NCBI RefSeq assembly: GCF_963506605.1
Contig: NC_083289.1
Location: 6,944,001-7,008,000 of the forward strand
DNA: 64,000 bases
Source of the DNA: Zootoca vivipara
Lineage: Eukaryota
Direction of reading: 5' to 3'
The notes under the pieces are model-generated. The model searched no databases, had not been told where the DNA came from, and saw only the letters and a program-made list of their open reading frames with translations. Shown piece by piece: positions 1,286-59,227 of this stretch. Each line of letters begins with the position of its first letter. The stretch's first letter is position 1. Both the position numbers and the translations under genes were made by a program.

Positions 1286-2879
1286 TTCTTCAGAGGAAAT
1301 AAGATAGCCTGCTCTATAGCAGGTAGGGAGCCAGCCTGGTCTGGTACCGGAGTTTTCTTGACCTCAACCTCCATCTCAACAGGGAGGTCAAAATTATGCA
1401 TGGAGACAGAATAATCTATTGACACCCGCTTTAAGGTAGGGGCTAATCATGGGCAGCTGGGGTGTGTGTCTCCAAAGGGATTCTAAGTGTGCAAACATAC
1501 ACAAATAAGTGTGTAGTCTTGCCTGTAACACTTTTTCTAAATGGCGATCATATTCATACAATAAAAAGTGTGTGTCCCTCACTTGCAAATTGCATAATTG
1601 TTTGCTTTTCCACAAGACGTATATAGTGCTCATTACCTACAAATGTTCAAACCTCTACATTGTCCTTGAGTTCCAACAGATGAAGGTCAGGTTTATAATA
1701 AACGTCGTTGGGAAGACTTGTGCATCAGCTTTCATTTGTGTACATTTATTCTAAGCCACCCAGAGCACTTTGTTGTGGGGTGGCATTCAAATGGCATAAA
1801 TAAGCAAATGTGTATGAACGGAAAATGGCCAGAGGCCTGGAAGCAGGCCTTTGTTCTGAATTTTCCTCCTTTATCAGACGTTGGCACAAGCTATCCCTGT
1901 TGCTATCACTATTGTTATTATTTATTTATTGCCTCTCACGAATTACAGGGCATTGCACAACATGATAAAACAGAATGCAGCAATAATAATTAAAAGCAAT
2001 TAATTACACCAACTCAACAAACAGCAAGACATAAAGAATAACACAGAATCAGCAAGTCTTGAGTGTTGTTGCTTTCTGTTTGATAGAAAAATCATATTTA
2101 ATGCATCTTTGTTTATATTTCCAGTTCTTTATCATTTTGTGATCTATCTGGAAAAGATTGTTAGAAATGTACCGTAATTGAACTGTATGATCAAACCCAC
2201 CAGCCCCAGCTTGACCCATTAGATCTGCATTTTCTTAGCTTTCCCCTGGGGCTTGGGGGAAGAAGAAGGCTGCTTTATTCAGAGACAGTCACCCCTGAGC
2301 AGATGTGAAGCGCTGCTTTATTCTCACAGTTAGGGTCTTAAGCAGAGGCTGATTTAAGTGACTTGTAAAAGTAAGGTCCTTAATTCTTGAAGTTCAGGAA
2401 ATGCCCTTTTGAAGATGGCAGGTCTCCTGGCTCATGCATGTTTTATTCCCAAACAAAAATTGATAAAACAATGGCTTGCTAATCTCAACAAGGCAGGACT
2501 GGATGGAATTCCCAGTATGCGGCAATGGCAGGCATTTGACCATCATAGCCAGCATGGGCGTAGGCATGAGCTGAAAACACTCAACATTAACATTGCTGCT
2601 CTACAGGGACAAGACTTCCTTCGAATGGCAGCCTCAGAGAGAACTACACCTTTTTGCGGCGAGGGCATCCTGAAGATTCACTGCGTAAGATTTGCAGCGA
2701 GGGACTCCCTTCTGTCTGTGATAGAACTGCCAGCTGAGAGCTCAGAATGCTTGCCTTCTCTCCATCTCTCTACCACCTCCATTCCGGTTAACATATTGAG
2801 TGTTTACGCTCTGTGTGCTCTGATATGCAGATCAAGAACAAGTTCTGCGAGGACCTGGACCAGGATGTCAGGAGCCTGC

Positions 2880-3110
2880 TAACACTTTCTCAGTAGTGGA
2901 GCCCGCCCTGTGGAATGCCCTCCCAGCAGATGTAAAAGAAATAAACAACTATCTGACATTTAGAAGACATCTGAAGGCAGCCCTGTTTAGGGAAGTTTTT
3001 AATGTTTGCAGTTTTATTCTGTTTTTGTGCTCTGCTGGGAGTTGCCCAGAGTGGCTGGGGAAACCCAACCAGATAGGTGGGGTATAAATAATAAAATTAT
3101 TATTATTACT
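2880..3110 (+). mobile_element. L2 3' tail (mirror copy at 58820-59060)
   Basis: ALWNALPADVKEINNYLTFRRHLKAALF followed by a (TTA)n tail. Confidence 0.8.
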
Positions 3111-4761
3111 ACTACCATTCCTGCTGGGAGAGTTCATCACAGTTAGGATAACCGCAGAGGCCGCCTTGGTATCGGGAGCCTGAACAAGAACGGAGACAGG
3201 CTTCTTGAACTGTGCTCATACCACAGCCTCTGCGTCACGAACATGTTATGCTCTACCAAGGCAAAACACTCAGTGTCCTGGAGACATCTTAGATGTCAGG
3301 TCACTGGCACCAGCGGGACTGGATTGTCACCAGGCGATTGCACTGAACTGTGTTAATGCCACACAGAGCGACCACAGCACTGACTGCGACGTGGTCACTC
3401 CCTGGTGGCAAGCAAAGAGGACCTCTAGCCAATCTAAGGTTCTGCACTTTGGCAGGAAGAAGCAGCTGCACCAATATGAGATGAGGGACACCTGGTTTGC
3501 TGGAAGGAAAAAGGATCTAGGGATCTTAGTGGACCATAAGCTTAACATAAGTCAACCTGAAAGTGATGCAGCAGCAAAAAATGCTAATGCTATTTTAGGC
3601 TACAACAAAAAAAGTGTCAAGATGAATGGAATAAAATAACACAAGGAAATTCAAAACAGTAACAATTTATTGTGCATTTATTCAAAATCCATTAAAAAAA
3701 TGTTTTTATTCCATGCTCTTCCTGTTCTCTTTCTTCTTTTCACCAATCAGTGAAATCCCGTCTCTGCCTTCAATCAGCTCGAGACCGAGACACTTGGAGT
3801 TATACAGGAGTAGATCATATATCCTAAGGAATGGGAAAACCCAAAATTCTGTGAGATCTTTTGAGGCAAAATAATGTTAACAATTGTCAGATCTTTCTCT
3901 GTCCCCTGCCCTGCCTTGTCTTTTGCCAAAACAAAGGTGGCCACCCTGTGCTCAGACAGCAAGACCCCCCTCTCTCTCGGCCTCCCTGAGGTGGTCCAAA
4001 GGAAACAAGAGCCCCAGCTTGGCTGCAGGAGTTGCCAGAAGGAGGTCTACAAAATGCCACCCAACCATCTTAGGGACTCCACTCTGCATCTGTGGAGGGT
4101 TTACTCTGGAGCCTTTTCTTCTCCTGAAGCCATCCCATGAGGCAGCAGAGGTTTAGAATCAGAGTTCTCCTCCATGGGCTCCCTTCCAGGGGGGATGAGC
4201 CCCATTATGCCCTCACTTCCCTCTACAGCACACGCACAAACAGCTTTCTCTGGATCTCATCCGCTCAATCTGCCGGAGTCTGTTTTCTGGCCCAGGGGAA
4301 AGTCCCTCACTCACTGAGGGTTTGAGACCCATTGGCTACCCTCCCCTGGTCCCCTGACCTCTTCTCCCTCTGACTGCTCATCCCTGTGCCCCCACCATTT
4401 CCTGGGCTCGGAGATGTCTTCCCTTCCTGGTTCTCCAACTGCTTCCTCCCACCATTCCTCTGTGCCTAACCAGTCCATGACATTGTTCCACCCCTTGGCC
4501 TCTGTCCCCAGAAGGCAGCTTCCCCCTACCTGATCTGGTCCCACAGCCACTGCTTCCCTTTTGCCCCCATGAAAATATGGAAAAGGAGGTCCTGCTGCCA
4601 TCATTCTGTCACCTGCAAGAGAAAAAAGGTAAGCAGGATGCCAGGAGTGCCTGCTTCTCTCACAGATGAAACAGGGCATCTCCAACTACAGGTGGGCTTT
4701 TGAGAAAGTCTTACCTGCTGAGTGAATTTGGATGTTGGCCTCTTTCTGGTGTCCGCACTAC

Positions 4762-57267: not shown

Positions 57268-57546
57268 GTAGTGCGGACACCAGAAAGAGGCCAACATCCA
57301 AATGCATTCAGCAGGTAAGACTTTCTCAAAAGCCCACCTGTAGTTGGAGATGCCCTGTTTCATCTGTGAGAGAAGCAGGCACTCCTGGCATCCGGCTTAC
57401 CTTTTTTCTCTTGCAGGTGACAGAATGATGGCGGCAGGACCTCCTTTCCCATATTTTCATGGGGGCAGAAGGGAAGCAGTGGCTGTGGGACCAGATCAGG
57501 TAGGGGGAAGCTGCCTTCTGGGGACAGAGGCCAAGGGGTGGAACAG

Positions 57547-58279
57547 TGTCATGGACTGGTTTCACACAGAGGAATGGTGGGAGGAAGCAGTTGGAGAACC
57601 AGGAAGGGAAGACGTCTCAGAGCCCAGGAAAAGGTGGGGGCACAAGGATGAGCAGTCAGAGGGAGAAGAGGCCAGGGGACCAGGGGAGGTTAGCCAATGG
57701 ATCTTAAACCCTCAGTGAGTGAGGGACTTTCCCCTGTGTCAGAAGACAGGCTCCGGCAGATTGCGCGGATGAGATCCAGAGGAAGCTGTTTGTGCGTGTG
57801 CTGTAGAGGGAAGTGAGGGCGTAATGGGGCTCACCCCCCCTGGAAGGGAGCCCATGGAGGAGAACTCTGATTCTAAACCTCTGCTGCCTCATGGGATGGC
57901 TTCAGGAGAAGGAAAGGCTCCAGAGTAAACCCTCCACAGATGCAGAGTGGAGTCCCTAAGATGGTTGGATGGCATTTTGTAGACCTCCTTCTGGCAACTC
58001 CTGCAGCCAAGCTGGGGCTCTTGTTTCCTTTGGACCACCTCAGGGAGGCCGAGAGAGAGGGGGGTCTTGCTGTCTGAGCACAGGGTGGCCACCTTTGTTT
58101 TGGCAAAAGACAAGGCAGGGCAGGGGACAGAGAAAGATCTGAAAATTGTTAACATTATTTTGCCTCAAAAGATCTCACAGAATTTTGGGTTTTCCCATTC
58201 CTTAGGCTATATGATCTACTCCTGTGTAACTCCACGTGTCTTGGTCTCGAGCTGATTGAAGGCAGAGACGGGATTTCAC
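57547..58279 (+). mobile_element. Probable solo LTR in the 3' region of the MROH-like gene (mirror copy at about 3750-4483)
   Basis: Starts TGTCATGGAC, purine-rich U3-like stretch, ends ...GATTTCAC; TSD not resolved. Confidence 0.45.
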
Positions 58280-59227
58280 CGATTGGTGAAAAGAAGAAAG
58301 AGAACTGGAAGAGCATGGAATAAAAACAAATATTTTTTTAATGGATTTTGAATAAATGCACAATAAATTGTTACTGTTTTGAATTTCCTTGTGCTATTTT
58401 ATTCCATTCATCTTGTCACTTTTGTTGTTGTAGCCTAAAATAGCATTAGCATTTTTTGCTGCTGCATCACTTTCAGGTTGACTTATGTTAAGCTTATGGT
58501 CCACTAAGATCCCTAGATCCTTTTTCCTACCAGCAAACCAGGTGTCCCTCATCTCATATTGGTGCAGCTGCTTCTTCCTGCCAAAGTGCAGAACCTTAGA
58601 TTGGCTAGAGGTCCTCTTTGCTTGCCACCAGGGAGTGACCACGTCGCAGTCAGTGCTGTGGTCGCTCTGTGTGGCATTAACACAGTTCAGTGCAATCGCC
58701 TGGTGACAATCCAGTCCCGCTGGTGCCAGTGACCTGACATCTAAGATGTCTCCAGGACATCTCCGTTCTTGTTCAGGCTCCCGATACCAAGGGGGCCTCT
58801 GCGGTTATCCCAGCTATGATGGTAATAGTAATAATAATTTTATATATTATACCCCACCCATCTGGTTGGGTTTCCCCAGCCACTCTGGGCAGCTCCCAGC
58901 AGAGCACAAAAACAGAATAAAACTGCAAACATTAAAAACTTCCCTAAACAGGGCTGCCTTCAGATGTCTTCTGAATGTCAGATAGTTGTTTATTTCTTTG
59001 ACATCTTTGACATCTGCTGGGAGGGCATTCCACAGGGCGGGCACCACTACTGAGAAAGTGTTTGCAGGCTCCTGACATCCTGGTCCAGGTCCTCGCAGAA
59101 CTTGTTCTTGATCTGCATATCAGAGCACACAGAGCGTAAACACTCAATATGTTAACCAGAATGGAGGTGGTAGAGAGATGGAGAGAAGGCAAGCATTCTG
59201 AGCCCTCAGCTGGCAGTTCTATCACAG

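Follow-up and report, generated by a model that had tools for sequence, protein, structure and literature searches.

An inverted repeat bearing copies of a lacertid gene family encloses MNS1 and TEX9 in Zootoca vivipara

In the lizard Zootoca vivipara the genes MNS1 and TEX9 lie between two long copies of one sequence in opposite orientation, and the question raised by this arrangement is whether the two genes form a cassette that flips by recombination between the copies, as a sequence-only reading had proposed, or whether the copies record some other event. Within the window, the whole stretch of 64,000 nucleotides analysed here, self-BLAST resolves three collinear inverted blocks (2716-7993 matching 59227-54065, 9226-10418 matching 54082-52859, and 11926-12596 matching 52851-52183). 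Self-BLAST and global alignment define a left arm at 2716-12596, of 9,881 bp including two later transposable element (TE) insertions, and a right arm at 52183-59227, of 7,045 bp, and both methods bear out the earlier observation that the one is the reverse complement of the other. The arms align over 6,943 columns with 159 mismatches (103 transitions and 56 transversions; CpG context in 46) and 24 indels, a substitution identity of 97.7%; with gaps included the identity is 93-96%, which agrees with the 95-97% estimated by eye. The edges of the arms are sharp at both ends of the repeat, and sensitive BLAST within the window finds no similarity past them. A third copy of a 640-bp arm piece, 85% alike, is located by self-BLAST at 47743-48382 (+); it is a LINE fragment outside the duplication. 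The inverted repeat around MNS1-TEX9 is confirmed as real, and structures like these paired arms are already known and fairly ordinary.

The spacer between the arms (12597-52182; 39,586 bp, 208 N included) holds both genes. The coding exons of MNS1 mapped so far run from 15992 to 22385 on the forward strand, with a Pfam TPH domain in five exons and matches to MNS1 chains in the PDB at E = 4e-28. The open reading frame of the first exon (15992-16321) is without a match in the PDB search, and its assignment follows from its position and the later exons. On the reverse strand, TEX9 occupies 25173-32893, where a homology search and a tblastn exon map locate exons for roughly the 3' two thirds of the gene; among the 73 proteins matching this region the named ones are bird and turtle TEX9, down to E = 5e-16, and the ESM Atlas returns only generic coiled-coil neighbours for one TEX9 exon. 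Two CpG islands complete the spacer, a candidate MNS1 promoter at 14251-15000, 1.7 kb inward of the left arm edge, and a candidate TEX9 promoter at 46501-47500, 4.7 kb inward of the right arm edge. The earlier description of a 39.6-kb spacer holding both ciliary genes is upheld, with the CpG islands as their candidate promoters. None of the genes neighbouring MNS1-TEX9 lies inside the window.

Two stretches present in the left arm only are true insertions. The first, a retroposed element of 1,235 bp at 7993-9227 (+), has an A-rich tail and a 15-bp target-site duplication, GAAAAGAGGTTCAAA, with copies at 7978 and 9228; the right arm has the empty site at 54066. The second, at 10422-11925, is a DNA-transposon-like insertion of 1,504 bp and 61% GC; it has terminal inverted repeats, CAGGGGTGTCAAAC and CACGGGTGTCAAAC, and a target-site duplication, CCCTAACT, at 10414 and 11926, whose 8-bp length is of the hAT type; here the right arm holds the empty site at 52844. 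Because target-site duplications in the left arm are paired with empty sites in the right, the two arms must have had separate histories as distinct loci. Sensitive BLAST finds no other copies of the two insertions within the window.

Each arm also carries a gene of its own. In the left arm, tblastn exon by exon places the RefSeq gene LOC132593186 (P0030) at 3304-7282 on the reverse strand, with exons at 7282-7040, 6647-6378, 6179-6102, 5997-5896, 5803-5717, 5491-5381, 5105-4983 and 3393-3304. This copy has in-frame stops in the usual frame, falling within 7132-7040 and 5491-5333, so that the words "no truncated gene" in the sequence-only reading, said there of the spacer, leave a pseudogene out of account. 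In the right arm LOC132593187 (P0025) occupies 54760-58729 on the forward strand, and its exons (54760-54891, 54927-55004, 55383-55652, 55851-55931, 56033-56134, 56227-56313, 56541-56654, 56927-57049 and 58640-58729) are open by tblastn; the ungapped exon matches are 96-100% identical, values under 100% arising where a match ends one residue beyond the exon edge. Both are Zootoca vivipara RefSeq models in exact agreement with the exons of the arms, and they lie on the same 54.49-Mb record, with consecutive locus numbers. The arm gene is a small multi-exon member of a family confined to lacertid lizards: all 43 proteins found come from Zootoca, Podarcis or Lacerta, and are distributed over many chromosomes.

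The nature of the encoded protein was pursued by several routes, the protein searches taking as queries single ORFs or exons. Pfam gives no family for 20 arm ORFs or for five full family models, even when E values as high as 1 are admitted, and in the same set there is no match to a HEAT or Maestro profile; a family profile run against PDB sequences returns nothing. The protein is predicted to be all-helical, as the AlphaFold2 core (residues 85-215) consists of helices throughout at pLDDT 80-88. Foldseek with this model has no match at E <= 0.001, and its top matches are designed helical repeats at E = 0.03-1.

Read depth provides further insight into the copy number of the unit. Over 56300-58663 in the right arm, the reads of three other individuals reach 16-29 times the depth of unique flank, and the same part in a related organism stands at about 15 times; the count takes in copies at 90% likeness or above and covers the outer 2.4 kb of the right arm, of which reads were aligned over 2.9 kb in all. 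The tested outer part of the right arm is therefore a multi-copy unit, and of the earlier characterisation of the arms as inverted low-copy repeats suited to non-allelic homologous recombination (NAHR), the size and identity hold and "low-copy" does not. Private letters of the right arm occur in 19 of 228 reads from the three other individuals, many more than sequencing error would produce. At 56906, 56919, 57518 and 58525 the two arms share a letter that is in the minority among reads, which makes them each other's closest relatives. This sister relation rests on DNA identity and the shared minority letters and not on a protein tree: in a tree of 41 members the two arm models are not placed together, a result that we judge uninformative because the RefSeq models differ in exons and frames. 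The read data consist of 150-nt reads, shorter than the 7-kb arms.

The junctions of the two arms differ in character. A 163-codon open frame at 2391-2879, which may be a LINE endonuclease remnant, runs across the left outer edge at 2716; Pfam gave no confirmation of an endonuclease in this frame. At the other end of the repeat, the right arm adjoins a CR1-like reverse-transcriptase fragment without its 3' part (59228-59466, reverse strand; its match to Pfam RVT_1, E = 2e-4, falls short of the curated cut-off), with a read depth of about 3,300x, and a single-copy contig of organism B, a relative, matches 59467-60909, ceases to match at 59467 and has another 1,762 nt. The right inner junction (52182/52183) cuts a SINE head. 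The flanks of a simple insertion should once have been contiguous, but those of the right arm are a truncated SINE head and a truncated CR1, so that it is no clean insertion. A further feature is an assembly gap of 208 N at 51508-51715, inside the spacer and 467 bp from the right arm, which breaks no arm or mapped exon and parts the right arm from everything leftward. GC-rich direct repeats of 58 bp and hairpin-prone tracts flank it, with a 16-nt inverted match across it, and sensitive BLAST finds no other copies of this flanking element within the window. With the gap between spacer and right arm, it is a scaffold join that holds the palindrome together; and as some 800 bp on the far side (58664-59451) are very high-copy repeats, at depths of 300-7,000x, the placement of the right arm is at short-read scale unproven by unique sequence. 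That the arms are on one chromosome rests on the scaffold join together with the two RefSeq models on one record.

On balance we favour the view that the arms are two paralogous copies of a unit of about 7 kb, arisen when one family member was copied locally in inverted orientation, and their standing as closest relatives fits such a local inverted segmental duplication of a single member. In this model the family would have expanded first, and the left-arm member beside MNS1 would then have been copied inverted to the far side of TEX9, likely by a DNA-level segmental duplication through replication template switching or break repair. After copying, the arms would have diverged by 2.3%, the left gaining the retroposon, the hAT-like transposon and the stops while the right stayed open. 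We infer this direction from the outer edges: the open frame crossing the left one and the truncated CR1 abutting the right one are weak pointers to a parental left copy and a derived right one. The divergence of the arms, 2.3% vs 3.3-3.6% between organisms A and B in unique flank, and the end of the contig of B at 59467 would both fit a duplication younger than the species split, and gene conversion could give the pair a falsely young look.

Other explanations place the right arm differently or invoke different events. It is quite improbable, in our estimation, that both copies exist and the right one, as a member of a family of about 20 copies, has been misplaced or misoriented next to the gap, so that the 56-kb palindrome is unreal. 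The gap 467 bp from the right arm and the 800 bp or so of very high-copy repeats on its other side speak for such an error. For one published Zootoca vivipara assembly, contigs made from short reads were scaffolded with mate-pair and PacBio data and then went through gap closing twice (PMC7643610), and a 208-N gap of estimated size fits an assembly of that type. However, both arm models stand on one chromosome-scale RefSeq record with consecutive locus numbers, the record is probably from a different, HiFi-based assembly (PMC13560796, where rZooViv1.1 and the haplotypes hap1 and hap2 of rZooViv2 are named as HiFi assemblies of the species), the arms are closest relatives as expected of neighbours, and the 16-nt inverted match across the gap is, weakly, like the ends of one element. 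Two simpler artefacts were considered and rejected. A haplotype mis-join does not agree with arms that are inverted, have different flanks, lie 2.3% apart and differ by two insertions bearing target-site duplications, nor with private letters present in three other individuals; on the strength of those insertions and that divergence, the earlier opinion that this is not a simple assembly artefact stands as far as a mis-join is concerned. A foldback read artefact is ruled out by the divergence of the copies and the 40 kb between them. If a large mobile element carrying the gene had inserted twice independently, this would account for the numerous copies spread over many chromosomes of several species, but at the arm ends there are neither terminal repeats, inverted or direct, nor an LTR, a target-site duplication or Helitron-like ends, no bases are duplicated between the flanks of the right arm, and the arms contain neither a transposase nor an intact reverse transcriptase, only short, broken, old LINE and other TE fragments. 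As the left edge is also crossed by an open frame, and as we estimate at about 1 in 1,000 the chance that two of some 20 copies in a 1.4-Gb genome fall 40 kb apart, this origin is extremely improbable. Less improbable, though still unlikely, is that the repeat is the footprint of a single past inversion of the MNS1-TEX9 block, in which staggered breaks with filled overhangs duplicated a 7-kb breakpoint region, inverted, at both ends of the block. Precedent exists in the D. melanogaster group, where 17 of 29 fixed inversions have inverted duplications of non-repetitive breakpoint sequence, often containing genes (PMC1885836). The geometry is exactly as predicted, X-A-S(inv)-A(inv)-Y, with inverted breakpoint copies at both ends, the left outer junction looks ancestral in that an open frame crosses it, as the model predicts, and a clean insertion does not describe the right arm. 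However, the right inner junction, also predicted to be ancestral, cuts a SINE head, the predicted continuation of the CR1 (from 59228) is absent in translation from 12597 onward, and 7 kb of unwinding between staggered nicks is long for the model. If this reading were true, the repeat would be the scar of a past inversion and not merely a substrate for future ones.

Whether the block also flips is a separate matter, for which a local duplication would provide the substrate. At 6,943 bp and 97.7% identity, the inverted pair lies above the values of about 1 kb and about 90% taken for an NAHR substrate, and we infer that recombination between the arms with flipping of MNS1-TEX9 is mechanically plausible. 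Repeats of such length and identity mediate human inversions, with an exact precedent in the FLNA-EMD pair (PMC8327919). An active cassette, in which both orientations of MNS1-TEX9 recur in the species or its relatives, is nevertheless very doubtful. Repeat length is the main predictor of inversion recurrence in humans, and 70% of the recurrent human inversions have repeats of at least 10 kbp (10.1101/2021.12.20.472354), against 7 kb here; the repeat is moreover interrupted by indels, to which the left arm adds insertions totalling 2.7 kb, its longest identical tract is 306 bp, and a divergence of 2.3% implies little exchange between the arms. This divergence shows that the arms are probably free of strong homogenising gene conversion, and they are unlike the primate X/Y palindromes, in which arm divergence lies far below the between-species value (here 2.3% vs 3.3-3.6%). 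The distribution of differences along the arms is mildly heterogeneous, with a variance-to-mean ratio of 2.06 that constraint or an uneven mutation rate could match; the longest identical tract has P = 0.11, the second P = 0.011 and the third P = 0.002. A more elaborate possibility, to which we give only slight credence, is that in the Zootoca lineage one member of a lacertid-specific, gene-bearing family resembling core duplicons was duplicated, inverted, to bracket MNS1-TEX9, with an inversion of the gene pair at that time or afterwards, and with both orientations perhaps still segregating; segregating orientations, if present, would explain the assembly breaks beside the right arm.

Should long reads confirm the arrangement, it would constitute a small, well-defined reptile case in which inverted duplicates that carry genes surround a pair of conserved ones. 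The locus offers datable markers in its 159 substitutions, its two insertions flanked by target-site duplications, and a gene copy that is broken in one arm and open in the other, and could be used for testing how inversion and gene conversion proceed in animals other than mammals and flies. What matters more generally is the existence of a lacertid-restricted family with tens of copies on many chromosomes and without a recognisable domain. Because a multi-copy family and a scaffold gap occur together in this region, users should not rely on a single assembly for its structure.

Several known systems resemble parts of this locus. Primate core duplicons are lineage-specific families, LRRC37, NPIP and GOLGA8 among them, that act as seeds of segmental duplication in hotspots of rearrangement, and the lizard family is similarly a lineage-restricted, fast-spreading one, on many chromosomes, with open and broken copies and with members bordering a block that could potentially invert; the lizard unit is small, however (7 kb), and the link to hotspots is one drawn for primates. 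The breakpoint duplications of Drosophila (PMC1885836) share with the lizard arms an inverted copy of an ancestrally local, gene-bearing sequence at the ends of a segment, one of the copies often being degenerate, although the fly duplications are mostly shorter and single-copy and two of the junction predictions fail in the lizard. There are also the human loci that toggle by inversion (10.1101/2021.12.20.472354), where inverted duplications more than 90% identical surround a unique block and NAHR is proposed, but most of the recurrent ones have repeats of at least 10 kbp, whereas the lizard arms share 7 kb and insertions interrupt one of them.

Another parallel is the human X palindrome P24, which contains FLNA and EMD in its spacer and has a known inversion polymorphism (PMC8327919, citing Caceres et al. 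2007). Primate X palindromes differ in having an arm divergence of less than 0.2%, held low by gene conversion (PMC8327919), compared with 2.3% in the lizard, and the lizard arms come from a family of about 20 copies and bear a gene of their own, while inversion there is documented and here would be a conjecture. The two loci are alike in that inverted repeats of about 10 kb enclose a spacer of tens of kb with a complete pair of broadly conserved genes inside it, and with the genes whole in the spacer, recombination between the arms would flip both without breaking either.

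Self-comparison of the window reveals three collinear inverted blocks between the two arms, in which 2716–7993 matches 59227–54065, 9226–10418 matches 54082–52859, and 11926–12596 matches 52851–52183. Global alignment of the left arm (2716–12596) with the right arm (52183–59227) gives 97.7% identity over 6,943 aligned columns, with 159 mismatches (103 transitions and 56 transversions) and 24 indels. The edges are sharp in both arms, and a sensitive search within the window found no similarity outside them. The sequence-only reading, that an inverted duplication brackets a spacer containing both ciliary genes, holds on both counts. 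MNS1 is represented by five plus-strand ORFs (19616–22385) that match the Pfam TPH domain in order, one of which matches the MNS1 chains of axoneme structures at E = 4e-28, and TEX9 by a minus-strand ORF (29926–30312) matching 73 proteins, of which the named ones are bird or turtle TEX9, down to E = 5e-16. Mapping with these matching proteins places minus-strand TEX9 exons at 32893–32732, 31926–31843, 30282–30106, 29329–29192, 26791–26648 and 25247–25173; the mapped exon sets leave out the TEX9 5' exons and the last MNS1 exon. The two genes are convergent, and the only CpG islands outside transposons (14251–15000 and 46501–47500) both lie in the spacer. An MNS1 intron contains two (GT)n microsatellites of 23–25 units, at 17841–17886 and 18457–18506.

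The arm genes are directed away from the spacer, head-to-head with MNS1 on the left (7282 versus 15992) and with TEX9 on the right (54760 versus approximately 47000), at a distance of about 8 kb in each case. Exon-by-exon mapping gives open exons for the right arm gene (54760–58729, plus strand) and the same exons with in-frame stops for the left arm gene (7282–3304, minus strand). A perfect 48 bp tandem duplication at 6976–7078, present as a single copy in the right arm (a 48 bp alignment gap), adjoins a stop-carrying exon. RefSeq models LOC132593187 (P0025) and LOC132593186 (P0030) match the right-arm and left-arm exons exactly, and both are on the same 54.49-Mb record. HMMER, run against the full library with a single right-arm ORF as query, recovered short Zootoca vivipara and Podarcis lilfordi proteins, and the family numbers 43 members at E ≤ 1e-5, all from Zootoca, Podarcis and Lacerta and spread over many chromosomes. 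The arm ORFs have no Pfam match, the family has neither a Pfam domain nor, by profile search, a PDB relative, and an AlphaFold2 model of a family protein has a confident all-helical core for which Foldseek returned weak matches only, to designed helical repeats. Membership of an MROH/HEAT-like family is thus unsupported, and what the data allow is a predicted helical repeat protein of unassigned family. The last coding exon of several family models (HVAVSAVVALCGINTVQCNRLVTIQSRWCQ; 3304–3393 and 58640–58729) lies antisense within a CR1-like reverse-transcriptase fragment and looks like an exonised transposon piece common to the family.

Raw whole-genome reads provide further insight into copy number. 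Reads from three further individuals under the same species label, each at about 1x, were mapped together with contigs of a related organism on 56300–62200 at a likeness of at least 90%, a test that covers 2.9 kb of the right arm. Depth in the unique flank (59649–60830 and 61225–62200) is 1.0–1.8, which is what 1.5 Gb of reads should give for a genome of 1.42 Gb (PMC13560796). Right-arm bins at 56300–58663 have a depth of 11–59; compared with the flank this is a factor of 16–29 for the three individuals and of about 15 for the relative, so that the earlier description of the arms as low-copy repeats has to be given up for this part. The left-arm letter is found in almost every read at positions 56645, 56734, 56973, 58207 and 58416; the right-arm letter occurs in 19/228, a frequency that far exceeds the error rate and corresponds to roughly one in every dozen or more copies. 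These animals therefore have the right-arm copy, as one of the many copies of a family. The arms agree with each other at 56906, 56919, 57518 and 58525 in a letter that is a minority among the reads, which makes them closer relatives of one another than of most family members. A junction present in one individual's read run only (X21) links 59455 back to 56840 in 11 reads, with 20 letters of different sequence in between, and may reflect how another family copy is built in that individual. A very high-copy element, probably a squamate SINE, occurs twice, at 58861–59057 and 60831–61027 (about 7,000x and 2,300x at 90% likeness), and this pair gives false 'skips' of approximately 1.9–2.1 kb in the relative's contigs.

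The arm-specific transposon insertions reported from the sequence are confirmed by their target sites. The left arm contains an insertion at 7993–9227 flanked by an exact 15 bp duplication (GAAAAGAGGTTCAAA at 7978 and 9228), which together with its 3' AATAAA signal and A-rich tail identifies it as retroposed sequence, and a hAT-like insertion at 10422–11925 with terminal inverted repeats (CAGGGGTGTCAAAC / CACGGGTGTCAAAC) and an 8 bp duplication (CCCTAACT at 10414 and 11926), a duplication length typical of hAT elements. The right arm has a single target copy for each, at 54066 and 52844 respectively, so that the arms have evolved as separate loci for some time. The hAT-like insertion itself contains a perfect 93 bp tandem duplication at 11567–11756 (2.0 copies, 100% match), which either arose very recently or was created by gap closing.

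The arms are not a transposon, as their ends lack terminal repeats and a target-site duplication and they encode nothing for their own movement, and it is very unlikely that they arrived independently at sites 40 kb apart. The best reading is that a local inverted segmental duplication would have produced the second arm, although not as a clean insertion, because the right arm is flanked by a truncated tRNA-type SINE head on its inner side and a truncated CR1 on its outer side. The main rival, which we regard as improbable, is that the spacer block was inverted through staggered breaks, a model that predicts inverted duplicates of the breakpoint region at both ends of the block (PMC1885836). 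The geometry of the arms is as this model predicts, and the left outer junction looks ancestral as it should, but the right inner junction does not look ancestral and the CR1 does not continue inside the left arm, both of which are predicted.

With local duplication as the preferred origin, the junctions suggest that the left arm is in the older context, since a 163-codon open frame (2391–2879) crosses the left outer edge and its counterpart in the right arm is cut at 59227, beside a CR1-like reverse-transcriptase fragment without its 3' part. We take this frame to resemble the start of a LINE endonuclease domain, a reading for which Pfam gave no confirmation. The unique flank differs by 3.3–3.6% between the window species and the relative (48/1,443, 13/385 and 27/742 letters) and the arms by 2.3%, so that the duplication would postdate the species split if no gene conversion has occurred. 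One single-copy contig of the relative, 3,200 nt long, aligns with 59467–60909 at 96.7%, and the remaining 1,762 nt have no counterpart in 56300–59466, neither in the right arm nor in the CR1 fragment. The relative's locus thus appears to differ from 59467 leftwards, a hint, not proof, that agrees with the younger age.

Where the right arm lies, and which way it faces, with respect to the spacer depends on the join across the sole N run in the window (51508–51715), a gap within the spacer that ends 467 bp short of the right arm; on the outer side, the arm's only anchor is a stretch of approximately 800 bp made up of very high-copy repeats. To its left the gap is bordered by GC-rich sequence with a 58 bp direct repeat and short complementary tracts, and within 51218–51737 the two sides share a 16-nt inverted match (CATGGGCGTACCCAGC / GCTGGGTACGCACCTG), which may represent both ends of a single foldback-type element difficult to sequence and gives weak support for continuity. 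The 208-N gap fits a published Zootoca vivipara assembly in which short-read contigs were scaffolded with mate-pair and PacBio data and gaps closed (PMC7643610). The RefSeq models matching both arms probably stem from a later HiFi assembly of another animal, and if so they support independently the presence of both copies on one chromosome.

Inversion of MNS1–TEX9 between the arms is put forward as a hypothesis. In humans, inverted repeats of this kind mediate inversions, with repeat length the main predictor of recurrence (preprint 10.1101/2021.12.20.472354). The arms share 7 kb of sequence, in which mismatches are only mildly uneven in distribution (variance-to-mean ratio 2.06); identical tracts extend to 306 bp at most, and those ranking second and third in length give P = 0.011 and 0.002. 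A close precedent for a gene pair in the spacer of an inverted repeat is FLNA–EMD in the X palindrome P24 (PMC8327919); the arms described here are ten times as divergent as those of palindromes that conversion keeps similar.
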